DNA of 64,000 nucleotides, from the sequence record KT919972.1, one strand, 5' to 3'. The position numbers were made by a program, and so were the translations under genes. Positions 2,924 through 51,328 of this stretch are shown here, piece after piece (the stretch's first letter is position 1; each line of letters opens with the position of its first letter). Under the pieces are notes generated by a model, which was given only the letters and a program-made list of their open reading frames with translations, had not been told where the DNA came from and did not search any database.

Positions 2924-3475
2924 ATGGCATTTATGAAAAAAGAGAAAGACACAAAAGACATTACAGAAGCAGATGTACAGTACGCAATTGCCGTACAAAG
3001 CGTATGGATTCACAAGAGATACACAGCGGTTATACCAAACTGTTACACCAAGTTCGATAATGAAGCTGATTTATTTGGTATTCGACCAAGTGGTTTATGT
3101 GATGAGATTGAAATCAAAGTATCTAAAGCAGATTATCGAGTTGACGAGCAGAAAACTGTTCTAATCGAAAATGAGTCTTACGATCACTGGCGTGACAAGT
3201 ATACCAAAACACCAAAACGTGATGCATTGCAAGATGGTAAAATGAGCAATTACTTCTGGTATGCATTCCCGCAAGGTCTTGTAGACCATGCTGATGTACC
3301 TGAGTGGGCTGGTATAATCGAAGTAGATGGTTTTCTCAATGCAAGAGAAGTAAGAATGCCAAAACGTCTACACGGTGGAAAGATGACAATCGAAGAGCAG
3401 TTGAAGCAAATCAAGAAATTGGGCTTTCGATTCTGGAATCTGGTTAAAAAGAACAAGAAGAGCGAAGCGAAATAA
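2924..3475 (+). CDS. PD-(D/E)XK-like (MmcB-type) nuclease-fold protein
   Basis: EADLFG..DEIEIKVSKADY..D..K and NYFWYAFP motifs. Confidence 0.65.
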   Translation: MAFMKKEKDTKDITEADVQYAIAVQSVWIHKRYTAVIPNCYTKFDNEADLFGIRPSGLCDEIEIKVSKADYRVDEQKTVLIENESYDHWRDKYTKTPKRDALQDGKMSNYFWYAFPQGLVDHADVPEWAGIIEVDGFLNAREVRMPKRLHGGKMTIEEQLKQIKKLGFRFWNLVKKNKKSEAK

Positions 3476-9277: not shown

Positions 9278-9535
9278 ATGACTGCACAACAAATTATCGC
9301 TTCACTAGAATCAACATATGACATCGACTATGCTTGTACAACTACTGATGGTGAAGTTCACACAATCACTGAGTATCGTGAAATCATCGGATGTCTTGTA
9401 ATTTCACCGCGTCGAGGTAGTATTGGTGTTGGTTATGTTCATGATGACGACACAGATGAAGTTCAACCGTATGATATTACGTGGTTCTCGTCTGATGACC
9501 TAAATTCTATCGAAGTTCACATTGATTGCTTATAA
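9278..9535 (+). CDS. Hypothetical protein
   Basis: First gene after cassette; 85 aa. Confidence 0.75.
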   Translation: MTAQQIIASLESTYDIDYACTTTDGEVHTITEYREIIGCLVISPRRGSIGVGYVHDDDTDEVQPYDITWFSSDDLNSIEVHIDCL

Positions 9536-9547
9536 GAGGAAAACATT

Positions 9548-9892
9548 ATGAAAACTATGAACGCTACTGACTTACGCGCTGTTGAAACACTAGTTGAACA
9601 AAATGATGCAGCGGTCGTCGATAAAGAAAAATACCGCAGTGCTCTTGCTTTCGCATATGGTTGCATGAACGGTGTTCAACGAGAAGTATATCGCGATTAC
9701 CACATGAATGTGTTAGTCGAGCGTTACGACATTGAGTACTGCAACGATGCGCAAGTGATCTTGCCTTACGGTGAATTGAAGTCAACTATCAAATTCATCG
9801 AAGAAACTCTAAGTGCTTCTGACTATGCAGAACTTAAAGAATACTTTCAATTCACGATTGCACTGGCGGTGAACGACAATGAAACGATTTAA
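9548..9892 (+). CDS. Hypothetical protein
   Basis: GAGGA RBS; 114 aa. Confidence 0.75.
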   Translation: MKTMNATDLRAVETLVEQNDAAVVDKEKYRSALAFAYGCMNGVQREVYRDYHMNVLVERYDIEYCNDAQVILPYGELKSTIKFIEETLSASDYAELKEYFQFTIALAVNDNETI

Positions 9893-11089: not shown

Positions 11090-11641
11090 TTACTTCTTAG
11101 CGGCTTTTTTAGCACGTTTAGTAGCCTTTTCAATCTTTATCAGCTCTGCTTCCATCTTCTCAAGACCTTGAAGATATTGATCAGATTGCTTGATGTCGCT
11201 ACGAAATACGCCTTTCGCTGTTGCAATATCAATGTCACTGTTGAGACTTGTGCGAAGCTTACGAACTAAGAACAACGAACGCTCTAAGTCTTTTTCAAAT
11301 GCTGCTACTTTCTTCTCAGTGATATCGTCTTGTTTCAGTGAGCGATACTTCTCGATTTTCTTCATAGTCTTTTTGAGTTCGCTGTAGTCTTTGCGTGCTT
11401 GACCGCCTGCAAATAACGCACCACCAATGAGACCATGAATACCGAGACTAATTGCACCCCATGTTGCAAGTGGTACAGCGACTGCCAACCCACCTGTTGC
11501 TGTCGCACCCGCTGCTGCGGTCATAAAGCCAAATGCAGCACCGAGAGATGCACCAGCTAATGCAGAACGACCAGCCCATTGCTTTATTGTAGCTTCTTTA
11601 AGCTCTGTTTCTTTATATTCATCAAATGTTTTAAGTTCCAT
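11090..11641 (-). CDS. Candidate capsid-internal protein with Gly/Ala-rich hydrophobic hairpin
   Basis: N-terminus MELKTFDEYKETELKE resembles the T4 capsid-targeting sequence; one of only two credible minus-strand genes. Confidence 0.7.
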   Translation of the reverse strand: MELKTFDEYKETELKEATIKQWAGRSALAGASLGAAFGFMTAAAGATATGGLAVAVPLATWGAISLGIHGLIGGALFAGGQARKDYSELKKTMKKIEKYRSLKQDDITEKKVAAFEKDLERSLFLVRKLRTSLNSDIDIATAKGVFRSDIKQSDQYLQGLEKMEAELIKIEKATKRAKKAAKK

Positions 11642-11671
11642 CACGGTATTCCTTTGTTGTCAGTAATAAAA

Positions 11672-11745
11672 AACGAGGGAAGCGACTATAGTTGGAACCA
11701 ATACTCGCAGTGACCAATGCGATACATAGTCACGACCCTCGAAAC
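11672..11745 (-). ncRNA. Candidate structured leader/small RNA ending in a U6 run
   Basis: Nested stems CGAGGG/CCCTCG, GACTAT/ATAGTC, TCGCA/TGCGA, TTGG/CCAA. Confidence 0.45.
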
Positions 11746-11828
11746 TGAATAAAATATTGTGTATGATATATTTAGTGCTACAACACTACTTGATTTACAA
11801 TTTTCTCATAAAAAAGACAAAATAATTG

Positions 11829-11857
11829 TTGACTAAAGTGTAAAAAATGCTTATCAT
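11829..11857 (+). promoter_or_regulatory. sigma70-type early promoter
   Basis: TTGACT-17-TATCAT. Confidence 0.7.
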
Positions 11858-11909
11858 AAGGCATATTCTGATTAAACGTTCAATAATCCAACAAAAAGAG
11901 ATTTATATT

Positions 11910-12374
11910 ATGACACCAAAAGACATTCTACGCGCTGCGAACACTACTGTTTCTAAGCTGAGTATTTTAAATGGCGAGTACAGCACAGTTGTTCTAGGCT
12001 CACCTGCAAGTGGTAAAAACACTATGCTATTGGGTATGATGATGCAACGTGGCATCGACAACTGTACAATGATCGTTACAGAAACACATCACGCTAATAT
12101 GGCTAATAAAATTGGTGTTGGTGCATTGGTTGTATGTGGTGGACTGAATCTTGAAAAACTCATTGAGGCAGTTTCATTTGCATGTACTCAAGATCGTGAA
12201 CATATCTTCATCGAGCACGTGCAGCCTATGTTAGGTCACGACATCGTTGAAATTCTAGAGTCAATCGTGAAACCATTCAACAAGCGCATCTACATCGGTA
12301 TTCAAGCTGCACGCAGTAGCGGTCTAGGTGATAACTATAAAACACAAATGATGAATACATTGACACTGGGGTAA
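11910..12374 (+). CDS. Small P-loop-like protein
   Basis: VVLGSPASGKN (Walker A-like); start re-chosen at 11910. Confidence 0.6.
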   Translation: MTPKDILRAANTTVSKLSILNGEYSTVVLGSPASGKNTMLLGMMMQRGIDNCTMIVTETHHANMANKIGVGALVVCGGLNLEKLIEAVSFACTQDREHIFIEHVQPMLGHDIVEILESIVKPFNKRIYIGIQAARSSGLGDNYKTQMMNTLTLG

Positions 12375-12376
12375 TT

Positions 12377-12652
12377 ATGAACTTCTTTCAAATAAGCATG
12401 AATTTAGCTATTGACCCATCAATTGAACCAGACGAAGAGTGGGCTGATAAGCAATTGATCATTGCTTCTAGTCACGAAATGGCTAGAAAACTTGCTGATG
12501 CACGCAAGAAAGGTCGTCATGGTTGGTTCGACCCTAATGTGTGCTCTATCGACTATCTCTATGAGTTGCGCGATAAAGCACTTGAAGATAATGATCACGT
12601 GAGTGTAATGAACTACACCGCAATGATCGCTATGCGGGAGAGTGTACAATGA
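12377..12652 (+). CDS. Hypothetical protein, possibly all-alpha NTP-pyrophosphatase-like
   Basis: KLADARKKGRHGW..C..L..DHVSVMNYTAM pattern seen in small phage proteins; fold call is tentative. Confidence 0.55.
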   Translation: MNFFQISMNLAIDPSIEPDEEWADKQLIIASSHEMARKLADARKKGRHGWFDPNVCSIDYLYELRDKALEDNDHVSVMNYTAMIAMRESVQ

Positions 12653-18599: not shown

Positions 18600-19625
18600 A
18601 TGTCACACGCAATCTTTATCGGACGCTTTCGTCCATTCCACAACGGTCATCTATCTGCAATCACTCAAGCATTCGACGCGCTTGATCTAGACAAGATGAC
18701 TATCTTAATCGGTAGCTCTAATCGACATCGTTCAGTTAAAAACCCTTTCACGTTCGAAGAAGTACGCGATATGATGGGTGTTGCTTTACCTGACGATATT
18801 CGAAGCAAAGTTCGCTTTGTACCACTAGGTGATTACGCGAAAGACGACGTTTGGCAGTCAAATGTTCGTGCTAGTACGAAAGGCGCCACTCACATCGTTG
18901 GTTACGACAAAGACGAAAGCAGCTACTATCTCAAGCTATTCCCTGAGCTAAAACTATTTCAACCTGAACCAGTGAAGATGTATAACAGAGTTATCTCTGC
19001 AACTGACTTCAGAGAACTGTACTTCAGCGAGATTCTACTGAATCACCCTGTTATGTCTGGTCTGATTCCCAAGCAAACAATGATGTTTCTTGACGATTGG
19101 AGCAAAACAGAGCATTTCACTGAAATGAAAGCTGAATACGATAGCTCAGTGCGCGAAATCGAGAAGTTTCTCGACTACCCTTACCAAGGTCACTTGAATA
19201 TCGCGTGTGCTGACAGCGTTGTGATGTGTGCAGGTCATGTTCTTCTTGTCGAGCGTAAGTTCAACCCAGGCAAAGGCTGTTTAGCATTACCTGGCGGTCA
19301 TAAGCATGAGAAAGAAACATTCTTAACTGCTGCGATTCGTGAACTACAAGAAGAAACTAACATCAAAGTCCCAGAGAAAGTCTTGCGTGGCTCGCTCAAA
19401 GATGAGAAGATGTTCGATAACCCAAATCGCTCTTACCCACACACTCGCATCACAATGGCATATCACTTCAAAGTGCAGCCAAACCCTGACAACACTTTCC
19501 CGAAAGTGAAGCCAGCCGATGATGCTGTATCAGCGAAATGGTACTCACTGAGTGAAGTAATGGACATGCAAGAACGTTTGTATGACGATCACTACCAAAT
19601 CATTCAGTATTTCACTGGCATCTAA
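18600..19625 (+). CDS. natV: Bifunctional NMN adenylyltransferase / Nudix ADP-ribose hydrolase (NadM-Nudix)
   Basis: FIGRFRPFHNGH, SATDFR; Nudix box GG..E..AAIRELQEET; DDA..A.W..DH. Confidence 0.93.
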   Translation: MSHAIFIGRFRPFHNGHLSAITQAFDALDLDKMTILIGSSNRHRSVKNPFTFEEVRDMMGVALPDDIRSKVRFVPLGDYAKDDVWQSNVRASTKGATHIVGYDKDESSYYLKLFPELKLFQPEPVKMYNRVISATDFRELYFSEILLNHPVMSGLIPKQTMMFLDDWSKTEHFTEMKAEYDSSVREIEKFLDYPYQGHLNIACADSVVMCAGHVLLVERKFNPGKGCLALPGGHKHEKETFLTAAIRELQEETNIKVPEKVLRGSLKDEKMFDNPNRSYPHTRITMAYHFKVQPNPDNTFPKVKPADDAVSAKWYSLSEVMDMQERLYDDHYQIIQYFTGI

Positions 19626-19631
19626 CTAATG

Positions 19632-19650
19632 GGGGCAGTAATGCCCCTTT
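19632..19650 (+). terminator. Probable terminator
   Basis: GGGGCA-GTAA-TGCCCC-TTT. Confidence 0.65.
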
Positions 19651-19662
19651 GAGGAAATTAAT

Positions 19663-19935
19663 ATGAGCATTAAACAATTAGCAAAAACTGAAGTAAACAA
19701 TTACAACACTGCATACGTAGATGTATACAAAATTCGTGAAGATATGATTGCAAAGTACTCTGCTGCTCGTGCATGTGTTGAACGCGGCGATGGTACTATG
19801 AAAAACTGTACATTACGTCGTGAAATCTGTCGCGCTCTTGATAATTCTAGTGATTGGAATAAAGTTGCTAAGACTGATTCTGGTCGTCTATTGTATCAAC
19901 GAGTGAAAAGCAATTCACTAGAGAACTTTGTATGA
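19663..19935 (+). CDS. Hypothetical protein
   Basis: GAGGA RBS; 90 aa. Confidence 0.7.
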   Translation: MSIKQLAKTEVNNYNTAYVDVYKIREDMIAKYSAARACVERGDGTMKNCTLRREICRALDNSSDWNKVAKTDSGRLLYQRVKSNSLENFV

Positions 19936-20282
19936 ACGCATACCGAATCAACACATCAATCGAAGATCTAGCAATAGTAAAAGGCGATTTGTTTGTTCAA
20001 AGTCCATTCAATGAACATGAATATAAAATGGCTCGTCAACCCCAACGACCACCAATGCACATCGACTTGATTACTCAGTTTCATCATCTTTATAATGAAA
20101 CGACTGCTACTGATGACGAAATCGCTGAATTGGTTCTAGAATGGAAGAATCAATTCAAAACACGAACCGAAGCATTGAATATGTTTCGCCAATCACTAAT
20201 CGAACAGCGCCAATCGATTGATGAACAAATCAAACAAACTACATCTACCATTGAACAATTACGTGAAAAGTTCGGAGAGTAA
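19932..20282 (+). CDS. Hypothetical coiled-coil protein
   Basis: 116 aa; ATGA overlap. Confidence 0.7.
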   Translation: MNAYRINTSIEDLAIVKGDLFVQSPFNEHEYKMARQPQRPPMHIDLITQFHHLYNETTATDDEIAELVLEWKNQFKTRTEALNMFRQSLIEQRQSIDEQIKQTTSTIEQLREKFGE

Positions 20283-20283
20283 T

Positions 20284-20910
20284 ATGCACGCATATGACTT
20301 AGTAAGAAAAATGCAAAAGGTTGTTGAGTCTTGCGAGACAATTGAACAACTACGCAATGCAAGAAAGTACCTCATGCGCTGTCAAGACTATGCACTCGAT
20401 GGTGGCAATGATAGCTACATCACTACTATCATGGTAGAAGTGCAAGACTTAGACGAACGCATCACCGATAAGATTGTTGAGTTGTCTGATACTCGTGGCA
20501 TGAACGCTATCGAAACTGGCGTTATCAAAGTCGGCATCGATATTCATGGCGTAATTGATCAATCACCAGAGTTCTTCGCGCTGTTAAGCAAACTACCAGT
20601 TGAAGTGCATATCATCACTGGCATTAAAGAAGAACTCGATACTGATGTACCAGATGACTTAGAGTATGAGCACTGGTTTAGCATTCATCAATCATGTGAA
20701 GACGACGGCGTTGAAATCTTGTACGACGAGAAAGGTCGCCCATGGGTCGATGACGAAATCTGGAACAACAAGAAAGCTGAATACTGCCGTGAGAATCAAA
20801 TCAATATCATGATCGATGACTCACCAACGTATGCTAGAACCTTCGAAGGTCTTGATACTTTCTATCTACAACTAACCAATACTGTTCGTGATGAATGGAG
20901 ACGCAAATGA
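20284..20910 (+). CDS. HAD-like phosphatase/nucleotidase domain fused to a helical N-domain
   Basis: VGIDIHGVID and IMIDDSP motifs. Confidence 0.7.
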   Translation: MHAYDLVRKMQKVVESCETIEQLRNARKYLMRCQDYALDGGNDSYITTIMVEVQDLDERITDKIVELSDTRGMNAIETGVIKVGIDIHGVIDQSPEFFALLSKLPVEVHIITGIKEELDTDVPDDLEYEHWFSIHQSCEDDGVEILYDEKGRPWVDDEIWNNKKAEYCRENQINIMIDDSPTYARTFEGLDTFYLQLTNTVRDEWRRK

Positions 20911-21092
20911 GAAATTACGGCATTATAGACCGAGAAGGTCGACATCTACTTGAACTTGAGATTGACAATGAGATAAAAGTCATGGCAATCTTTTCTGAAA
21001 TCGAAGATGCAAATCGTGTGCTGTACAAATATGATTTCGACAAACAAGGCTTTCGCGTAATCGAACTACAACCATTGGAAAAGAAACTATGA
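20907..21092 (+). CDS. Hypothetical protein
   Basis: 61 aa; GGAG RBS. Confidence 0.6.
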   Translation: MRNYGIIDREGRHLLELEIDNEIKVMAIFSEIEDANRVLYKYDFDKQGFRVIELQPLEKKL

Positions 21093-21304
21093 ACGTATCA
21101 AATGTAATGTCACAACACGCTGAAATTCAAGATGCACTTATTGCTATGCTCGACGATGAGTTCAACGGCAAAGGTCATATCGAATATGCAGATTACTTCG
21201 ATGACGAACAACTATGGGAAGTGCAATACTTCGATGGTGAAACAGTACAAGAAGTCATTGTAACTACAGTCGCGCTCGAAAAATGGATGCATAAGAACAA
21301 ATGA
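21089..21304 (+). CDS. Small acidic protein
   Basis: 71 aa; resembles next ORF. Confidence 0.65.
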   Translation: MNVSNVMSQHAEIQDALIAMLDDEFNGKGHIEYADYFDDEQLWEVQYFDGETVQEVIVTTVALEKWMHKNK

Positions 21305-21513
21305 TTCATGACATAATCATCGAGCATCGTCGCATAATGAACATAATCACTGAGTTATGCCAACTCAAATCATATGAATTCATTGATGACATCGAGTACG
21401 ATGAAGACAAACAAATATTCTATGTCACTATCGCTGAAGAAACTCAAAACGGCACTGAATACATAGAATGTAAAATCACTCTGCAATTAGTAGAAAACTA
21501 CTATAAGGCTTGA
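21301..21513 (+). CDS. Small acidic protein
   Basis: 70 aa; resembles previous ORF. Confidence 0.65.
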   Translation: MIHDIIIEHRRIMNIITELCQLKSYEFIDDIEYDEDKQIFYVTIAEETQNGTEYIECKITLQLVENYYKA

Positions 21514-21515
21514 CA

Positions 21516-21686
21516 ATGAAATTACCAGAATACTTAAAGCACATCAAAGTAAACGAAAACGTAATCACTGTTGACTCAGCACGCGATAAAGCTTTGGTCA
21601 TCGATTACCTACAATCAATCAAAGCACGATTCCATACTGTACAAAAGACAGTTAGCCGCTGCGAAATTCACGTGAAGAGAGCTTAA
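21516..21686 (+). CDS. Hypothetical protein (56 aa)
   Basis: Fills the gap between neighbouring genes. Confidence 0.55.
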   Translation: MKLPEYLKHIKVNENVITVDSARDKALVIDYLQSIKARFHTVQKTVSRCEIHVKRA

Positions 21687-21688
21687 TC

Positions 21689-22045
21689 ATGAAAGAACTA
21701 CTTAAAACAATGACAGAAACTGAAGAAGCCATCGCAGCTAAGTTTGGTCTCGACCATCTATGGCACGGACTAGTAGACTGCACCGATGTACTATTCACAT
21801 GCGATCTAGTAACTGATGACGTGAAAGATATGCATACTGTCATTGATCAAATACGTGAGTTTCAATACGGCTTTGAAGACGCTAATGCATTAGAAGAAGG
21901 CGAATGCTATGCAGTAGAAGTGTACGGCACAAGCGTGTGGCTATCAACTGATGGCAAATACATGTTGACTGTTGCCAATGACGGACGTGCCAGAGACTTC
22001 TATATCTTCGATATGAATAATCTCAGATCATATGAATTATATTAA
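21689..22045 (+). CDS. Acidic hypothetical protein
   Basis: 118 aa. Confidence 0.7.
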   Translation: MKELLKTMTETEEAIAAKFGLDHLWHGLVDCTDVLFTCDLVTDDVKDMHTVIDQIREFQYGFEDANALEEGECYAVEVYGTSVWLSTDGKYMLTVANDGRARDFYIFDMNNLRSYELY

Positions 22046-22048
22046 AGA

Positions 22049-22114
22049 AAAGGGTTGACAGTTGTCAGCCCTTTCGCGTATCATACACATATCAAATCAA
22101 GAAAGGAAAACATT
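22049..22114 (+). promoter_or_regulatory. Terminator/promoter cassette
   Basis: AAAGGGTTGACA-GT-TGTCAGCCCTTT with -35 TTGACA, -10 TATCAT. Confidence 0.8.
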
Positions 22115-22288
22115 ATGATCGGACTATCTATTATTATACTTGTGTTCACTGTAGTCTTGACGTTCGACTCAGTTGAAAGCATCATGAGCAAAGAATACAA
22201 AACTTTCATCTGTATCTTCCTTGTCATATGCGCTGTCGTTAATGTAGCTAACATGATTGTGATTCACAAATACGGAGTAATATCATGA
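22115..22288 (+). CDS. Small two-TM protein
   Basis: 57 aa, hydrophobic; AGGAA RBS. Confidence 0.6.
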   Translation: MIGLSIIILVFTVVLTFDSVESIMSKEYKTFICIFLVICAVVNVANMIVIHKYGVIS

Positions 22289-22449
22289 GCTTGACAATAC
22301 TACTAATGACACTTCTATGCTGTGCAATACTCACTGGCATGAGTATCTTCAGCTTCATTAACAAACCTAGATTCGTGAAACTAGTAATCACTGCTGTTCT
22401 AGGCTTTGTCTCGTATGTTCTACTACACGTAACGGCAGGCGCAATATGA
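22285..22449 (+). CDS. Small membrane protein
   Basis: 54 aa, hydrophobic; GGAG RBS. Confidence 0.55.
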   Translation: MSLTILLMTLLCCAILTGMSIFSFINKPRFVKLVITAVLGFVSYVLLHVTAGAI

Positions 22450-22661
22450 ATCAAACTATCAAAGCAATATGCATCGACAATACTTCAACTCGTATCGATA
22501 AACCCGAACCACCAAGCGGCATTACTCTAGGCAAAGAATATGTCGTTCACATGTATAACGTAAACGAACATACAAATAAACCACCTATGATTCGTATTAC
22601 TAATGACAACAACCAACGAGCAAGCTATGTCGCTGCACGCTTTAATCTATCAATAGGATAA
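22446..22661 (+). CDS. Hypothetical protein
   Basis: IKAICIDN..ITLGKEY.V pattern; 71 aa. Confidence 0.65.
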   Translation: MNQTIKAICIDNTSTRIDKPEPPSGITLGKEYVVHMYNVNEHTNKPPMIRITNDNNQRASYVAARFNLSIG

Positions 22662-22665
22662 ACTC

Positions 22666-22833
22666 ATGTTCGCACTATCAATCTTAATTCTGATTCTCAC
22701 TACATATCTGTTTGTAACCGATAAATCAAAACGAACAGTTCCATTCGTGGCTCTGCTAATAACAACTGCGTTTAACTGTATCATTCAGTATTACCTAATT
22801 GATATTCTATCATTGAGCTTTAAACTATCGTAA
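22666..22833 (+). CDS. Small two-TM protein
   Basis: 55 aa, hydrophobic; AGGA RBS. Confidence 0.5.
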   Translation: MFALSILILILTTYLFVTDKSKRTVPFVALLITTAFNCIIQYYLIDILSLSFKLS

Positions 22834-22949
22834 TGCAAACACTAATCAATCTACTAAACGATATACCTATCGGCTACATTATGCTTGTTCTATGTGCTCT
22901 AGCAGCTATAGCCGGTTGGTGCCTGAGCGATATATCAAACAATGACTAA
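22833..22949 (+). CDS. Small one-TM peptide
   Basis: 38 aa; TAATG overlap. Confidence 0.45.
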   Translation: MQTLINLLNDIPIGYIMLVLCALAAIAGWCLSDISNND

Positions 22950-22964
22950 AAAAGAGAAAATATT

Positions 22965-23510
22965 ATGAAATTAGTTACTACTACTCGTACAAAACATTAT
23001 GTCAAAAACTTCGATTACATCCGTATGACACGAGGCGAAAAATCTCGTATGGGAAATGTTGTACGTACGTTCAGTCCTAAAACAAAAGAACCAATCTTTA
23101 TCATTGAAGATGTTTTCGGCGGACACACAACTCAAATCAAATCCGATGAGTGGAAATATGAAATTCAACTCAATGATTTGTGGCACAAAGCAGAGTTCGC
23201 TTGGTACGACCGTGACGTGAAAGAATCAAATGTACTAGTATACTACAAAACAAAAGAAGACGTGAAAGAACTCAATGTAGGCGATGTTATCCCTGTTCAT
23301 GCTAGTACGTGGGAGAGCGGCAAAGGCGACAGAGTTCTGAGTGAAACAACTGTCAATGCTTGTATCATTGCATTGAATAACATGCAACTAGTGACAGTCA
23401 TCAACGGAAAATATGTCGTATTTGATTTGCGAACGTTCGACTATACTCATTATAAGCGTTCTACAACAGATGGCTATTATCTGCGTGCAGACTGTTCATT
23501 ACGTGCGTAA
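22965..23510 (+). CDS. Hypothetical protein (paralog of 24666-25274)
   Basis: ELNVGDVI..NGKYVVF..DGYY. Confidence 0.75.
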   Translation: MKLVTTTRTKHYVKNFDYIRMTRGEKSRMGNVVRTFSPKTKEPIFIIEDVFGGHTTQIKSDEWKYEIQLNDLWHKAEFAWYDRDVKESNVLVYYKTKEDVKELNVGDVIPVHASTWESGKGDRVLSETTVNACIIALNNMQLVTVINGKYVVFDLRTFDYTHYKRSTTDGYYLRADCSLRA

Positions 23511-23601
23511 AAACGCTTAGAATCGCTCTCACAGCGTCTCAGAGCATGGTACAGATATAACGCTTTTTAATATATCGCACCATGCCTCGTTTAAATGCAC
23601 A

Positions 23602-23710
23602 TGTGTATAAATCTGTGGATAATATGTGTATGAGATTGTGCATAAGTGTCTGAAATCTGTGTATAAAAACATGATTTAGCTGTGCATAAGTCTGTGGATA
23701 ATGTGGATAA
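23602..23710. promoter_or_regulatory. Cluster of eight co-oriented DnaA boxes (candidate origin or DnaA-titration site)
   Basis: TGTGGATAA at 23614, 23693, 23702; TGTGTATAA at 23602, 23658; TGTGCATAA at 23637, 23681; TGTGTATGA at 23625; in a ~370-bp noncoding gap. Confidence 0.8.
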
Positions 23711-23817
23711 CTTTTTAGTGAAAAAATGGTGAAAGTCTCATCGGCTCCTGTGTGGTACGCGGCAGTCTAAAACCTTACACCATTTATGAAAATCTAATTC
23801 GCTTCGCATCTTCTTGC

Positions 23818-23847
23818 TTGACAGCCAGCGGCATTATGTGAGAGAAT
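23818..23847 (+). promoter_or_regulatory. Probable sigma70 promoter
   Basis: TTGACA-18-GAGAAT with upstream TG. Confidence 0.55.
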
Positions 23848-23880
23848 GCAAAGAGATTTGAACTGCCTACGGAGGTAATT

Positions 23881-24027
23881 GTGATTACATTGGCGTTATT
23901 TTATATGAGTCGCGACATGAAATACTGTGAGCGACCAAGTGACTTGTACCTTGGTACATGTATTTTAGACTTTGCATTAATCGCCACGATGTTCTGTGGT
24001 GTAATGATGTTCACAGGGAATTGGTAA
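23881..24027 (+). CDS. Small membrane protein (48 aa)
   Basis: GGAGG RBS, GTG start, TAATG overlap with next gene. Confidence 0.55.
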   Translation: MITLALFYMSRDMKYCERPSDLYLGTCILDFALIATMFCGVMMFTGNW

Positions 24028-24350
24028 TGTTGTTTAAGAATTACAGAGTGAATCGCCATGTTCGTGCTCGTGCTATAGAGTTATTGAATTGTGGTGAGTT
24101 GCATCGCGTGTATACTTGTTTAGAGTTACATCGTGGTGTGAGTGACGAGATGGTTAGTTTGATTAAGCTTAAACTAAAGCATTTGCAGCGTATGTACGTA
24201 CGGCAGAGTGATTTGCCGAATGATTTAGAAGATTGTTATTCTTTTATCTGTGCGTATCACCCGCCTTGTGAGCGTCGTAAGTTGCGTGAATATGAGCGTA
24301 AGTCGTGGTTGAAATACATTATAGAGAACATTAATAAGGTTAAGATATGA
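24027..24350 (+). CDS. YTC/RxxWL family protein, member 1
   Basis: VRARAIELL..YTC..FIC..RKSWLKYI. Confidence 0.7.
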   Translation: MLFKNYRVNRHVRARAIELLNCGELHRVYTCLELHRGVSDEMVSLIKLKLKHLQRMYVRQSDLPNDLEDCYSFICAYHPPCERRKLREYERKSWLKYIIENINKVKI

Positions 24351-24655
24351 AGAAGTACAGATTAGGTAATTTGTTGCGTGGTGGTTGGTCTGGTGAGTTT
24401 TCCAGTCTTGAAGAAGCGTGGGTTCAGTTAGGTTCGCGTTTTCTACTATCATTTCCGTGTGAGAAATGGGAGAAAGACATTGGTATGTCTATCAATGAAG
24501 ATGGTGGTCGTACTGTGTATATGTATGTTCAAGAAGAGAACAAGTATGGTCAATTAGATTGGGCTTGTTGTAAGAACGGTGTGTTCTATATGAACGAACG
24601 AGTGCCAGTAACGGCAGACGATTACAAGCGTTGCAGTGATGTAGAATTTTTCTAA
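24347..24655 (+). CDS. Hypothetical protein
   Basis: 102 aa; ATGA overlap. Confidence 0.7.
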   Translation: MKKYRLGNLLRGGWSGEFSSLEEAWVQLGSRFLLSFPCEKWEKDIGMSINEDGGRTVYMYVQEENKYGQLDWACCKNGVFYMNERVPVTADDYKRCSDVEFF

Positions 24656-24665
24656 GGGTTATAAG

Positions 24666-25274
24666 ATGAAACGAATTGAAAGACATAAGAAAGTAGTAGA
24701 CAAGAAAGCGATTATGCCGAGCGGTAGTATGGTACGAGTTGAGACGTACTACAACACATGGTCTGGTTATTTGAATTGCCTTGACTCAGGTGATGGTATA
24801 CGTGGTATAGAGCAACCGACTTATATGCTAGTATCTGACAATGGTGCTTTTTACTCAGTTGAAGAAGATAAAGTAAATGGTAACAAGCAGACACAGACAA
24901 AATACGATGGTCAGTTGGTACTTGTACATGCTCGATTGAAGTTGTCAGCGAAAGATTGGGATTGGTACCCTTGTAAGTGGAAGAGTGGTCGTCTTGTATA
25001 TGCGTATAAAGAAACTGATTTTGTCGATGAAGAGCACGAGCTAGTGGTTGGTGAGATTATAGACATTTATGCCGCAAGCGATAGTACATCGTCATATGCA
25101 CATGACGCGACAGTTGTTGTATCACGTCCGACACAAATTGCTGTTGAGACGTATGGTAAACTAGTAGTGTTTACGGTTGGTTCTGATACAGATGAACTAG
25201 TATCTGATTGTGGTGATTATCGTATTGATGGTCGATATGCTGCTAGTCAGTACGATGAAGAGCTTCATTCGTAA
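24666..25274 (+). CDS. Hypothetical protein (paralog of 22965-23510)
   Basis: ELVVGEII..YGKLVVF..DGRY. Confidence 0.75.
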   Translation: MKRIERHKKVVDKKAIMPSGSMVRVETYYNTWSGYLNCLDSGDGIRGIEQPTYMLVSDNGAFYSVEEDKVNGNKQTQTKYDGQLVLVHARLKLSAKDWDWYPCKWKSGRLVYAYKETDFVDEEHELVVGEIIDIYAASDSTSSYAHDATVVVSRPTQIAVETYGKLVVFTVGSDTDELVSDCGDYRIDGRYAASQYDEELHS

Positions 25275-25280
25275 AAGTTA

Positions 25281-25319
25281 AAGAAAAGGGTTGCGCTATG
25301 CAGCCCTTTTTTATATTCT
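25281..25319 (+). promoter_or_regulatory. Terminator/promoter cassette; left 31-bp direct repeat
   Basis: AAGAAAAGGGTTGCGCTATGCAGCCCTTTTT; TTGCGC-17-TATTCT. Confidence 0.85.
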
Positions 25320-25343
25320 ACAGTTTTTGAATTGGAGGATAAT

Positions 25344-26414
25344 ATGACTAGAATTAAATGGACACCTGAACGTCTTAAAGAAGATGCGTTGAAATACAAG
25401 ACTCGCCAAGAATGGAAGAAAATGTCATCTGGATACTCTGCTGCTCAGAGTAGGGGTATAATTGATGAGTGTTGTGGTCATATGACAATGCATCAAAAAC
25501 CTAAAGGGTATTGGACACTTGAACGTCTTAAAGAAGATGCGTTGAAATACAATACTAGAAGTGATTGGCAGAAAATGTCAGGCAGTGCTTATGATGCTGC
25601 TCATAAGAAAGGGTTGCTTGACAAGTGTTGTGGTCATATGAAGGCATCAACTAAAAACGCATTTTCTCGCTGTATATATCGAATCTATGCAGGTAATGAG
25701 ATTTACATTGGGTTGACTTACGATACTAAGCAACGCTTTAGTTCTCATCGAAAGAAAACAACTCAGGTCATAGACCTAATCGAACGTCATGGCATTGAAA
25801 ACGTCAAGTTCGAGCAATTGACTGAGTATATGAATCAAGAACTGGCGCAAATTGCAGAGAAAGAACACATTGAGTACTACAGAAACAATGGATGGATTAT
25901 TTTAAATCGTTCTAAAGCTGGTGCATTGGGGAGTTCAACATTAAAATGGACACCTGAACGTCTTAAAGAAGATGCGTTGAAATACAAGACAAGTTCTGAG
26001 TGGCGGAAAATGTCACCCAGTGCTTACGCTGCTGCTCATAAGAAAGGATTACTTGACGAGTGTTATGCTCATATGACAATGCATCAAAAACCTAATGGAT
26101 ATTGGACACTTGAACGTCTTAAAGAAGATGCATTGAAATATAAGACTCGCCGAGAATGGAGGGAAAACTCTAGCGGTTGTAGTAATGCTTATAACCAGGG
26201 TATAATTGATGAGTGCTGTGCTCATATGGAATTACAAAGAAAACCTAATGGATATTGGACACTTGAACGTCTTAAAGAAGATGCATTGAAATATAAGACT
26301 AGAAGTGATTGGCAGAAAAACTCTAGCGCGGCTTATTCTTCTGCTAATAGAAAGGGGTTTCTTGATGAGTGCTGTGCTCATATGACAAAGAACGCTCGTT
26401 GCAAGCGAAAATAA
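25344..26414 (+). CDS. GIY-YIG (Seg-like) free-standing endonuclease with five ~50-aa repeats
   Basis: CIYRI..IYIGLT..KQR..H..E..I..Y..LN core; 2 N-terminal and 3 C-terminal WT.ERLKEDALKY..C..HM repeats. Confidence 0.85.
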   Translation: MTRIKWTPERLKEDALKYKTRQEWKKMSSGYSAAQSRGIIDECCGHMTMHQKPKGYWTLERLKEDALKYNTRSDWQKMSGSAYDAAHKKGLLDKCCGHMKASTKNAFSRCIYRIYAGNEIYIGLTYDTKQRFSSHRKKTTQVIDLIERHGIENVKFEQLTEYMNQELAQIAEKEHIEYYRNNGWIILNRSKAGALGSSTLKWTPERLKEDALKYKTSSEWRKMSPSAYAAAHKKGLLDECYAHMTMHQKPNGYWTLERLKEDALKYKTRREWRENSSGCSNAYNQGIIDECCAHMELQRKPNGYWTLERLKEDALKYKTRSDWQKNSSAAYSSANRKGFLDECCAHMTKNARCKRK

Positions 26415-51010: not shown

Positions 51011-51328
51011 ATGGTATTCACTGAAGAGCAGCTTGATCAAGTCGAGCACAACTACTCGCATATTGATACTGTCAATCTTGCAGATAGAAAGGGCGTGCCA
51101 CAAGCGAAGTATGTCATAGAGATACGACAAGGCACGTATACTAAATTCAAAACATCTTGGTTAAGTCAAGATTCATGCGAAGAGCGAGATATTGACCCGG
51201 AGCTAGTCGGTTATTGGATCTTATCAGACGCAATCGACCCTTATTGGTACTCAGTTCAAGAATGCTTAGAGCAGTATGAATGGGAACCAGCACGCGAAGT
51301 AACAATCACAACATGGGAAGCAATTTAA
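51011..51328 (+). CDS. Acidic hypothetical protein
   Basis: GAGGT RBS before ATG 51011. Confidence 0.65.
   Translation: MVFTEEQLDQVEHNYSHIDTVNLADRKGVPQAKYVIEIRQGTYTKFKTSWLSQDSCEERDIDPELVGYWILSDAIDPYWYSVQECLEQYEWEPAREVTITTWEAI

Follow-up and report, generated by a model that had tools for sequence, protein, structure and literature searches.

An array of eight host-type DnaA boxes at a strand-bias switch in the T4-like Vibrio phage phi-Grn1

Introduction

T4 is the textbook case of a phage whose replication is independent of the host initiator. Its origins are few, dissimilar and only partly understood, the repeats at oriE still have no known role, and how its MotA-less relatives start replication is unknown. 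It was of interest to ask why a T4-like Vibrio phage should carry, in a noncoding gap, a cluster of binding sites for the host replication initiator DnaA. The cluster was pointed out in an earlier note made from the sequence alone, which described eight co-oriented DnaA boxes and proposed either an origin assisted by host DnaA or a datA-like decoy that sequesters or inactivates DnaA, neither of which its author knew from T4-superfamily phages. The sequence analyzed here was a 64,000-nucleotide stretch of Vibrio phage phi-Grn1 (KT919972.1; Straboviridae, KVP40-like), hereafter the window, together with the whole 248,605-bp genome and the genomes of its relatives.

Results

Organization of the array

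The eight boxes were all found at the positions given in the note, and its observation is confirmed exactly. They conform to TGTGNAT(A/G)A, and the start-to-start spacings are 12, 11, 12, 21, 23, 12 and 9 bp. The region 23511–23880 holds no credible ORF and is unannotated in the GenBank record. Seven of the eight boxes fit the stringent DnaA consensus TT(A/T)TNCACA, three of them being perfect, while the remaining one (TGTGTATGA) is of the same type as the E. coli oriC site R5M, TGTGAATGA. The motif is the Vibrio/E. coli DnaA box, the high-affinity box of V. cholerae being TTATCCACA (PMC4285127). The features of the locus are listed in Table 1.

Table 1. Features of the phi-Grn1 locus (positions in the 64-kb window; GC3 and AT3, third-codon-position GC and AT skew)
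Position	Strand	Feature	Observations
18600–23510	+	Left skew domain, nine or more consecutive ORFs; top strand poor in G and rich in A and C	GC3 skew strongly negative, −0.13 to −0.73 (0–29th percentile of 229 + strand ORFs); AT3 skew raised, median +0.04 against −0.09 elsewhere (p=0.006)
23511–23601	.	Conserved left flank of the noncoding region: 10-bp-spaced direct repeat TCACAGCGT/TCAGAGCAT (23529–23547), AT tract CTTTTTAATATAT (23563–23575), GC-rich block CGCACCATGCCTCG	About 80% identical between phi-Grn1 and KVP40; long runs invariant in 9 phages; motifs unique in the window
23602–23610	+	Box 1, TGTGTATAA (complement TTATACACA, the same sequence as the E. coli R2 site)	Varies at positions 5 and 6 among relatives
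23614–23622	+	Box 2, TGTGGATAA (perfect)	Invariant in all 8 distinct box-type phages
23625–23633	+	Box 3, TGTGTATGA (one mismatch; same type as the E. coli low-affinity site R5M)	Degenerate in every relative
23637–23645	+	Box 4, TGTGCATAA	Invariant in all 8 phages
23658–23666	+	Box 5, TGTGTATAA	Perfect TGTGGATAA in nt-1, CZ01, VS1, VS2 and QD01
23681–23689	+	Box 6, TGTGCATAA	Perfect TGTGGATAA in nt-1, CZ01, VS1, VS2 and QD01
23693–23701	+	Box 7, TGTGGATAA (perfect)	TGTGGATTA in the more distant relatives
23702–23710	+	Box 8, TGTGGATAA (perfect, abutting box 7)	CGTGGATAA in the more distant relatives
23711–23817	.	Conserved right flank, function unknown: AT tract ACTTTTTAGTGAAAAAAT (23710–23727), invariant blocks CTCATCGGCTCCTGTGT and GAAAATCTAAT.CGCTTCGCATCTT	Weak evidence for RNA structure; no Rfam match
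23818–23847	+	Strong sigma-70-type early promoter, TTGACA-18 nt-GAGAAT with an upstream TG, reading rightwards away from the array	10 of 12 matches plus the TG; hexamers conserved in both core types
23881–24027	+	First downstream ORF, small hydrophobic protein of 48 aa from the GTG start (annotated as 40 aa from 23905)	phrog_16778, unknown function
23958–26414	+	Right skew domain, four ORFs; top strand poor in C and rich in T and G	GC3 skew among the highest in the genome, +0.35 to +0.52 (97–100th percentile); very low AT3 skew; third-position C 10% against 20% elsewhere

The note had named the box density against a shuffled background as a test of the observation, and the outcome was in favor of the array. 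In the window, TGTGNATRA occurs 20 times against 9.5 ± 3.1 expected, and none of 100 shuffles reached 20. Eight of the 20 lie within 109 bp, and all three perfect TGTGGATAA of the window are in the array. In the whole genome there are 41 matches, and no other window of 150 bp or less holds three or more, nor does any other pair lie within 30 bp. Three of the four perfect boxes of the genome are in the array. In 200 shuffles the largest cluster was at most 3, a size reached once. Hence, the cluster is unique in the genome.

Conservation of the boxes and their loss in KVP40

Conservation in KVP40-like genomes, which the note had likewise set as a criterion, gave a divided picture. The array is kept in at least 15 distinct phages of two genera, Schizotequatrovirus and Mylasvirus. 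Across 8 distinct genomes of the two genera, 9 of 72 box columns vary against 21 of 37 spacer columns (p=2e-6), which indicates clear purifying selection on the boxes. Variation is concentrated at the degenerate position 5 of the DnaA consensus, where four of the nine variable columns are located. Between phi-Grn1 and VS1, the boxes are 90% identical, the spacers 59.5% and the flanks about 70%.

However, all phages of the KVP40 species, KVP40 itself included, lack every box although the flanks are conserved. The boxes are therefore dispensable for whatever the locus does there. The KVP40 core has no iterons of its own and contains only one inverted repeat. A third type of core was sought in uncultivated relatives by scanning IMG/VR and JGI metagenomes with the flank motifs, which returned only KVP40, VH7D and two chance hits.

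Comparison with bacterial origins and with uncultivated phages

The same three-box phased pattern occurs in at least 120 bacterial genomes. All 10 flanking ORFs tested beside such arrays are oriC-neighborhood genes, nine being dnaA or dnaN and one yidC, and spacings of 11–12 bp dominate in the dnaA/dnaN-flanked arrays. This is in agreement with the co-oriented, mostly one-helical-turn phasing of the phage array. Most of the chromosomal origins examined, though, have two opposed sub-arrays, whereas all the phage boxes point one way. Co-oriented DnaA-box arrays were also common in uncultivated phage contigs in general. At least 120 viral contigs of IMG/VR carry 3–10 phased boxes, and two of these arrays sit directly behind VapE-type primase-helicase genes.

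Several other components of a gammaproteobacterial origin were looked for. Short AT tracts of low duplex stability border the array on both sides (23555–23575 and 23707–23727). These 12–20-bp tracts rank among roughly the 1% least stable 20-mers in the window, but no 40-bp window stands out and several coding segments nearby are less stable, so that no unwinding element of usual size is present and the short tracts neither establish nor exclude an adjacent unwinding element. No GATC occurs in 23511–23880. Only one IHF-like site with one mismatch is present, at background frequency, and it is not conserved; neither a datA-like nor an oriC-like IHF site was thus found. A resemblance to E. coli oriC next to R1 (ATCGCAC..TGCC) was considered, but the local alignment scored no better than shuffles (23 of 300; left flank alone, 33 of 300), and no sequence similarity beyond the box was retained. 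A tblastn search with three DnaA proteins gave nothing better than E=0.57, and no Rep-type gene is nearby. The flanking ORFs belong to PHROGs of unknown function, and most neighboring genes have unknown function. DNA modification is sparse, about 816 dPreQ1 per million nucleotides (about 0.08%), and hence should not block binding.

Transcription signals, RNA structure and other candidate motifs

Apart from the early promoter downstream (Table 1), the only promoter candidate inside the array, TGCACA-16-GATAAT, is not conserved in VS1 or nt-1. A leftward sigma-70-like site at 23862–23833 is also not conserved, and the late-promoter motif TATAAATA is absent. No intrinsic terminator was found after the upstream gene. 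A structured RNA in the flanks was not supported, as z was −1.9, the consensus (alifold) energy was −5.8 kcal/mol and only two pairs were compensatory. A PhoB box (CTGTCAT direct repeats with an 11-bp period) was excluded because no TGTCA is present and position 4 of every box is G in all phages. A Fur box and a CRP site were also rejected on sequence.

Several GenBank records open at this locus, which suggested a physical genome end. However, the R10Z junction is seamless with no terminal repeat, and the PVA23 paper gives no method for defining the ends. The shared start is probably arbitrary.

Strand asymmetry at the gap

The largest 2-kb GC-skew step of the whole genome was located at record position 208,200, exactly at the array, and the largest same-strand GC3 step is also here. 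AT3 skew is complementary, and the polarity is that of an origin, with the G- and T-rich strand diverging from the gap. In seven relatives, all left-side ORFs and all ORFs within about 1.5–2 kb to the right have the same sign as in phi-Grn1, including ORFs without homologs in phi-Grn1. The KVP40-species phages also keep the step. The skew extends only about 5 kb to the left and 3 kb to the right, and it is partly confounded with codon usage. Highly expressed genes also have GC3 skew of −0.23 to −0.34, so the left genes may simply be codon-optimized and the right genes poorly adapted. The switch is therefore compatible with an origin without identifying one; substitution spectra at four-fold degenerate sites on either side of the gap were not polarized. 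The published GC-skew 'origin' of phi-Grn1, at record position 51,089, is the transcription-direction switch and not this locus.

Discussion

A tentative model of a DnaA-assisted origin

The explanation we favor, though only tentatively, is that the array is a genuine, selectively maintained assembly site for host DnaA within a conserved cis-acting noncoding region that behaves like a replication origin of these MotA-less T4-like vibriophages. Three perfect and four consensus high-affinity boxes plus one weak R5M-type box, all head-to-tail and mostly 11–12 bp apart, represent the layout that lets DnaA-ATP form a directional filament on one half of a bacterial oriC. In this view, host DnaA would load soon after infection on the strong boxes (2, 7 and 8) and spread over the phased neighbors. 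The filament would strain or open the short AT tract on the side where E. coli oriC has its unwinding element, i.e., upstream of boxes written TGTGGATAA, and may also stabilize an R-loop from the adjacent strong early promoter. The opened DNA would then be coated by gp32 and receive the phage helicase through gp59, giving the first forks. The sequence identity with the DnaA box, the selection on the boxes, the uniqueness of the cluster, the oriC-like phasing and the strand-asymmetry switch at this site rest on direct analysis, whereas DnaA binding itself, unwinding and use as an origin are inferences, no binding or replication data being in existence.

The interpretation offered in the note is thus partly supported. 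Its assignment of the phage and of the motif held, and its origin branch gained support from the phasing and the asymmetry switch, while the loss of the boxes in KVP40 and the absence of IHF site, GATC and substantial unwinding element qualify it, and the sequence alone does not separate origin from decoy. As in the note, no description of such an array in T4-type phages was found in the literature that could be searched, but the phased arrays of uncultivated phages restrict the novelty to the T4 superfamily. According to PMC2988021, motA is absent from KVP40 and nt-1, and none is annotated in phi-Grn1, so the MotA-dependent R-loop route of T4 oriF/oriG is not available to KVP40-like phages and nt-1. 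The promoter near the array is of the sigma-70 early type rather than a MotA-dependent middle promoter. GC skew is +0.2 to +0.3 for about 3 kb downstream of the 23818 promoter, as a transcript prone to stay annealed would require, but with no direct evidence of an R-loop this observation does not settle the matter. On the other hand, T4-type replisomes carry their own helicase and loader and are not known to use DnaA, of which the T4 origin account consulted makes no mention. As the KVP40 species has lost the boxes but kept the flanks and the asymmetry, the origin-like behavior does not need DnaA boxes, and DnaA is best seen as an auxiliary, replaceable activator of this origin and not its core.

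Alternative explanations

The readings below were considered less likely. The array could bind host DnaA and yet serve as a sink, drawing it away from the host origin or inactivating it as phage genomes multiply; eight sites times hundreds of copies would block new rounds of host replication and free precursors and replication factors for the phage. High-affinity, clustered boxes under selection fit this possibility, as do the dispensability of the element in one lineage, which is typical of accessory host-takeover functions, and the lack of a proper unwinding element and of GATC, expected if the site does not need to fire. Titration of DnaA by chromosomal boxes is an established control principle in E. 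coli (PMC12371093). However, simple titration does not need strict co-orientation, 11–12-bp phasing or a conserved weak R5M-type box between strong ones, features that point to ordered filament assembly. The IHF site that datA needs for DnaA-ATP hydrolysis is absent, and the effect of the amplified array on host initiation was not measured. A sink also does not explain why the array sits in a deeply conserved noncoding region at a strand-asymmetry switch. Somewhat more doubtful is a role in transcription, in which a DnaA filament would act as a roadblock or insulator, stopping read-through from the upstream early genes or tuning the strong early promoter, so that early gene expression would depend on the host's DnaA-ATP level, i.e., its growth state. 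The array does lie between two co-directional early transcription units, with no terminator-like hairpin after the upstream gene and a strong conserved promoter after the array, and DnaA is a transcription factor and roadblock at box clusters in E. coli (see also PMC11317965). The sharp change in codon usage and skew at the gap fits a boundary between units with different expression. Yet eight phased boxes are far more than known DnaA operators use, the last box is 108 bp from the −35 hexamer, KVP40 keeps the promoter and flanks without the boxes, and the negative skew of the upstream, same-strand genes in non-homologous genes of relatives is not explained.

Equally doubtful is the possibility that the repeats are iterons for a phage-encoded protein, or for another host protein, whose site happens to resemble the DnaA box, the KVP40 lineage having changed both the protein and its sites. 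T4 oriE has repeats with no known binder, the core differs between lineages while the flanks stay, as in iteron/initiator co-variation, and most neighboring genes have unknown function. Against this, three copies match the 9-mer exactly, the pattern of tolerated variation, free at position 5 and with an R5M-type variant, is exactly that of DnaA, and neither iterons in the KVP40 core nor a DnaA-like or nearby Rep-type gene was found. A broader version of the origin model, somewhat less likely than the model above, can also be considered: a whole branch of the T4 superfamily that lacks MotA (Schizotequatrovirus and Mylasvirus vibriophages) would fire a primary replication origin with the help of host DnaA assembled on an oriC-like half-array, a trigger since swapped for another in the KVP40 species. 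The local C-to-T and A-to-G asymmetry on opposite strands either side of the site would then be a mutational footprint of repeated single-strand exposure at that origin.

A selectively maintained, oriC-style DnaA array at the one place in the genome where strand bias flips gives a precise, testable candidate origin, or a DnaA-directed takeover device, for a large group of marine and aquaculture vibriophages, of which nt-1 or its relatives with Vibrio natriegens form a convenient laboratory pair. The KVP40 species provides a natural 'knock-out' for comparison. The widespread phased arrays in uncultivated phage contigs suggest that recruiting DnaA is a more general phage strategy than is currently documented.

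Comparison with known systems

The array resembles the DnaA-oligomerization region of bacterial oriC, for example the left half of E. coli oriC (R1-R5M-tau2-I1-I2) and the Thermus and Deinococcus dnaA-dnaN arrays, in its 9-mer consensus, in its mixture of strong and weak boxes running head-to-tail at 11–12 bp, and in the AT tract upstream of boxes written TGTGGATAA, as in E. coli, where the unwinding element precedes R1. It differs in its single orientation, in having no 13-mer or large unwinding element, no GATC cluster, no IHF site, no adjacent dnaA/dnaN and no sequence homology beyond the boxes, and in its location in a lytic phage that encodes its own replisome. With E. coli datA, a DnaA-titrating and DnaA-ATP-hydrolyzing locus whose function depends on copy number, it shares a noncoding cluster of high-affinity boxes away from the origin. 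However, datA needs an IHF site between its boxes, and the box number, phasing and uniform orientation differ.

T4 oriE (RepEA/RepEB) is a T4-family origin described as a cluster of evenly spaced direct repeats, dependent on an early promoter and not a MotA promoter, and in this pairing of repeats with an early promoter it is comparable to the phi-Grn1 locus. The 12-nt T4 repeats are GTTGAAGGTAAT with a 24-bp period, lie inside the coding repeat of gene 5 and are unrelated to DnaA boxes, and no rep genes are annotated near the phage array, which is noncoding, made of 9-mers and matches a host protein's site. DnaA boxes also occur in plasmid and temperate-phage origins (P1 oriR, RK2 oriV, pSC101, lambda region), and, like the IMG/VR arrays, these show mobile elements recruiting host DnaA through tandem boxes. 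Those elements usually combine the boxes with their own initiator and iterons and depend on the host replisome, whereas phi-Grn1 is a T4-type lytic phage with a complete replisome of its own and no initiator gene next to the array.

Genomic Context and Occurrence of DnaA Boxes

The window corresponds to the last 64 kb of the GenBank record of Vibrio phage phi-Grn1 (KT919972.1; Straboviridae, Schizotequatrovirus valkk3), a phage of V. alginolyticus, the window coordinate being the record coordinate minus 184,605. The neighborhood of the array is a long run of small early-type genes, all on the + strand and almost all annotated as "hypothetical." Pfam and PHROGs searches of the eight nearest ORFs gave only families of unknown function, with the exception of a GIY-YIG homing-endonuclease-like gene. 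This gene encodes 360 aa, with a central GIY-YIG nuclease domain flanked by about five copies of a ~55-aa module (W-T-x-E-R-L-K-E-D-A-L-K-Y-K-T ... D-E-C-C-x-H-M), an unusual repeat architecture for a homing-endonuclease-like protein. The eight 9-mers were found as described in the earlier note, whose account of their sequences, spacings, and shared orientation proved exact, and the gap in which they lie contains no credible ORF.

The motif TGTGNATRA occurs 20 times in the window against 9.5 ± 3.1 expected, and eight of these occurrences fall within 109 bp. All three perfect TGTGGATAA boxes in the window belong to the array. The genome-wide count against a shuffled background, which the earlier note had put forward as a test, was carried out on all 248,605 bp and gave 41 matches on both strands. 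No other stretch of 150 bp or less held three or more matches, no other pair lay within 30 bp, and three of the four perfect boxes of the genome were in the array, whereas the largest cluster in 200 shuffles was at most 3. The cluster is real, unique in the genome, and far beyond chance. The coordinates of the features are collected in the table.

Features at and around the array and in the sequences compared with it
Feature	Window coordinates	Other coordinates	Strand
Third-codon-position asymmetry, centered on the intergenic gap	18600-26414	record 203,205-211,019	
Noncoding gap	23511-23880		
10-bp-spaced direct repeat, TCACAGCGT / TCAGAGCAT	23529-23547		
Conserved AT tract, CTTTTTAATATAT	23563-23575		
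Array of eight 9-mers	23602-23710		+
Opening points of several linear GenBank records	~23776/23777 and 23806/23807		
360-aa GIY-YIG ORF	25332-26414		
Largest rise in GC skew (2-kb arms)		record 208,200	
7-deazaguanine modification gene set (outside or at the edge of the window)		record 179,572-184,000 and 11,567-12,451	
Box-less KVP40 core		L002 (KVP40 locus) 3088-3215	
T4 gene 5, 3' coding repeat		L265 (T4 locus) 9403-9570	

Identity of the Boxes and Their Conservation

The high-affinity DnaA box of V. cholerae is TTATCCACA, as in E. coli (PMC4285127). Seven of the eight boxes fit the stringent consensus TT(A/T)TNCACA, and the eighth, TGTGTATGA, shows the same deviation as the weak E. coli site R5M, TGTGAATGA, as read from the oriC of MG1655. 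Conservation in related phages, which had also been named in advance as a test, provided the strongest argument. A blastn search with the array identified it in 17 Vibrio-phage records representing 15 distinct phages, of which the ValKK3/VH7D group was 95-100% identical, and nt-1, CZ01, VS1, VS2, and QD01 were 82-86% identical; nt-1 belongs to another genus, Mylasvirus. The same search gave weak hits to two ~5-kb microvirus-like records (Dipodfec virus UOA04_Rod_1057 and a human-gut "Bacteriophage sp."), which may carry similar box arrays. Alignment of the eight distinct versions showed that 9 of 72 box columns vary against 21 of 37 spacer columns (Fisher p=2e-6). The variable box columns were position 5 (four boxes), positions 6 and 8 (two each), and position 1 (one), position 5 being the N of the DnaA consensus, while boxes 2 and 4 were invariant. 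Between phi-Grn1 and VS1, the boxes were 90% identical, the spacers 59.5%, and the flanks about 70%.

A constraint with exactly the tolerance profile of DnaA is hard to explain by a different binder. The phage has no DnaA-like gene of its own (best tblastn E=0.57). A 7-deazaguanine DNA-modification gene set (FolE, QueD, QueC, QueE, and a QueF-like reductase) is present in the genome, but the modification is sparse, with 816 dPreQ1 and 35 mdPreQ1 per million nucleotides, i.e., roughly 400 sites per genome (PMC10516641). Modification should therefore not prevent recognition of the boxes. The low number of modified sites implies a rare target motif, which has not been identified.

Loss of the Boxes in the KVP40 Species

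KVP40, phi-pp2, VH1_2019, the TCU phages, PVA8, and others (13 records, 12 distinct phages, all of the KVP40 species) were found to have no box at the homologous place. The flanks, however, are about 80% identical to those of phi-Grn1, and even the longer spacers between boxes 4/5 and 5/6 are recognizably conserved. Within the core, box columns are only 37% identical against 60.5% for spacer columns (p=0.027). The boxes have therefore been erased or overwritten in place. The KVP40 core has no iterons of its own, only an 11-nt inverted repeat (AAAACCGTGTA / TACACGATTTT). As the box type occurs in two genera and several species, it is probably ancestral, and the locus evidently has a function that survives without the boxes. 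The direct repeat in the left flank is conserved in box-type and KVP40-type phages alike and may be a site for another protein. Several independent GenBank records also open their linear sequence inside this intergenic region, PVA23, PVA8, and PC-Liy1 at one point and R10Z and R11Z 30 bp away. The R10Z junction is seamless with no terminal repeat, and this is probably an arbitrary opening of a circular assembly, although the coincidence is unexplained.

Origin Features Tested at the Locus

In E. coli, the unwinding element lies upstream of boxes written TGTGGATAA. On the same side of the phage array, a conserved AT tract is followed by a conserved GC-rich block, and a second AT tract abuts box 8. 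Both tracts are among the roughly 1% least stable 20-mers of the window, but at 40 bp nothing stands out, so there is no unwinding element of normal size. The gap contains no GATC and no conserved IHF site, and no similarity to oriC beyond the boxes was found. A strong early promoter, TTGACA-18-GAGAAT with an upstream TG, lies 108 bp to the right and reads away from the array, and no terminator follows the upstream gene. The flanks gave no Rfam hit and only weak evidence of RNA structure.

Strand Asymmetry Centered on the Gap

A strand-asymmetry switch, which was not part of the earlier note, was detected at the locus. With 2-kb arms, the largest rise in GC skew anywhere in the genome falls exactly at the array. 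With 5-kb arms, the site is at the 99th percentile, exceeded only by the main switch in transcription direction at 54 kb, whereas here all genes on both sides are on the + strand. Nine consecutive ORFs to the left have GC3 skew of -0.13 to -0.73 (0-29th percentile of 229 + strand ORFs), and the four ORFs to the right have +0.35 to +0.52 (97-100th percentile), after which values return to average. The step is the largest same-strand step in the genome, 0.25 against 0.108 for the next independent one. AT3 skew is complementary, with a left median of +0.04 and a right median of -0.25 against -0.09 elsewhere (p=0.006 and p=0.008). Third-position C falls from 20% to 10% on the right while T and G rise, and on the left G falls while A and C rise. 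The top strand is C/A-rich for about 5 kb to the left and G/T-rich for about 3 kb to the right. This is the pattern of C-to-T and A-to-G change on the top strand to the right and on the bottom strand to the left, and it has the polarity of a bidirectional origin or of divergent single-strand exposure.

In seven relatives (loci L002, L005, L007, L010, L011, L014, and L015), every ORF to the left is negative and every ORF within about 1.5-2 kb to the right is positive, including ORFs with no homolog in phi-Grn1 and phages of the box-less KVP40 type. The effect therefore goes with position and not with particular genes. However, highly expressed genes (capsid, sheath, gp32, and gp45) also prefer C- and A-ending codons, with GC3 skew of -0.23 to -0.34, and the left genes could be codon-optimized and the right genes poorly adapted. 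The left genes overshoot the optimum in several families (Gly GGC 0.53 against 0.23, CTC 0.18 against 0.06, and CCG 0.03 against 0.30), which favors a mutational component, but the two causes were not cleanly separated. Hence, the asymmetry is considered supportive and not decisive, and it marks the locus, not specifically the boxes.

Possible Roles of the Array

The analysis itself demonstrates a unique, co-oriented, and helically phased cluster of host-type DnaA boxes under purifying selection with DnaA's own tolerance profile across two phage genera, an oriC-like layout, a deeply conserved noncoding setting, coincidence with the sharpest local strand-bias switch in the genome, and clean loss of the boxes in one species. 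That DnaA binds the array, and what such binding does, is inferred. The earlier note had proposed either a host-DnaA-assisted origin or a DnaA sink, and this interpretation is partly supported. DnaA-assisted opening of a phage origin is tentatively preferred over the other readings. A DnaA sink appears unlikely though possible, and a DnaA-dependent transcription block or control and a non-DnaA binder are each somewhat more doubtful still. DnaA-box arrays as such are already known; what is new is the placement of this variant in a phage family where involvement of the host initiator has not been described.

Comparison With Chromosomal Origins, Viral Arrays, and T4 Origins

Two public collections were scanned for three phased boxes (TGTGGATAA-N2-3-TGTGNATRA-N2-3-TGTGNATAA), a pattern estimated to give far fewer than one chance hit per collection. 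At least 120 loci across many phyla were obtained among bacterial genomes. The 10 ORFs examined beside such arrays were all oriC-neighborhood genes, nine being dnaA or dnaN and one yidC, and spacings of 11 and 12 bp dominated. This layout is therefore the DnaA-assembly region of chromosomal origins. Most of the bacterial arrays examined consist of two opposed sub-arrays, while the phage array has a single orientation; single-orientation origins have been reported for H. pylori.

In IMG/VR, the same pattern occurred at no fewer than 120 loci in uncultivated viral contigs (L019-L138, e.g., L118, L108, L099, L113, L056, and L039), with arrays of 3-10 mostly co-oriented boxes at 11-12-bp spacing. 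Their neighbors are mixed: two arrays lie just behind VapE-type primase-helicase genes, others lie next to terminase, methylase, or small AT-hook ORFs, and one 78-kb contig with an rIIA-like gene carries a four-box array. A giant-virus contig, L092, has a box-like 12-nt coding repeat that is unrelated. Recruiting DnaA through phased boxes therefore seems common among phages in general. For T4-type phages, however, no description was found: no paper combining "DnaA box" with KVP40 was found, the phi-Grn1 genome paper offers only a GC-skew "origin" elsewhere, the review of T4 replication initiation never mentions DnaA (PMC3016281), and two other phage papers report only Ori-Finder software predictions.

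T4 has at least five origins with no shared motif. Of these, oriF and oriG use MotA-dependent transcripts as R-loop primers, whereas oriE has evenly spaced 12-nt repeats of undefined role and depends on an early promoter (PMC3016281). KVP40 and nt-1 have asiA but no recognizable motA (PMC2988021), so the oriF/oriG route is not obviously available to these phages. The T4 oriE repeats, read directly from the sequence, are GTTGAAGGTAAT with a 24-bp period and are unrelated to DnaA boxes. They coincide with the 24-nt (8-aa) coding repeat at the 3' end of gene 5, and their conservation in relatives could therefore reflect protein structure and not a DNA-binding function. The box-less KVP40 core carries the short words GGTAAG (twice) and GTTGAA, which faintly recall the oriE repeat, although this may be chance. 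The phi-Grn1 array is thus analogous in form to oriE, as a repeat cluster next to an early promoter, but not homologous to it.
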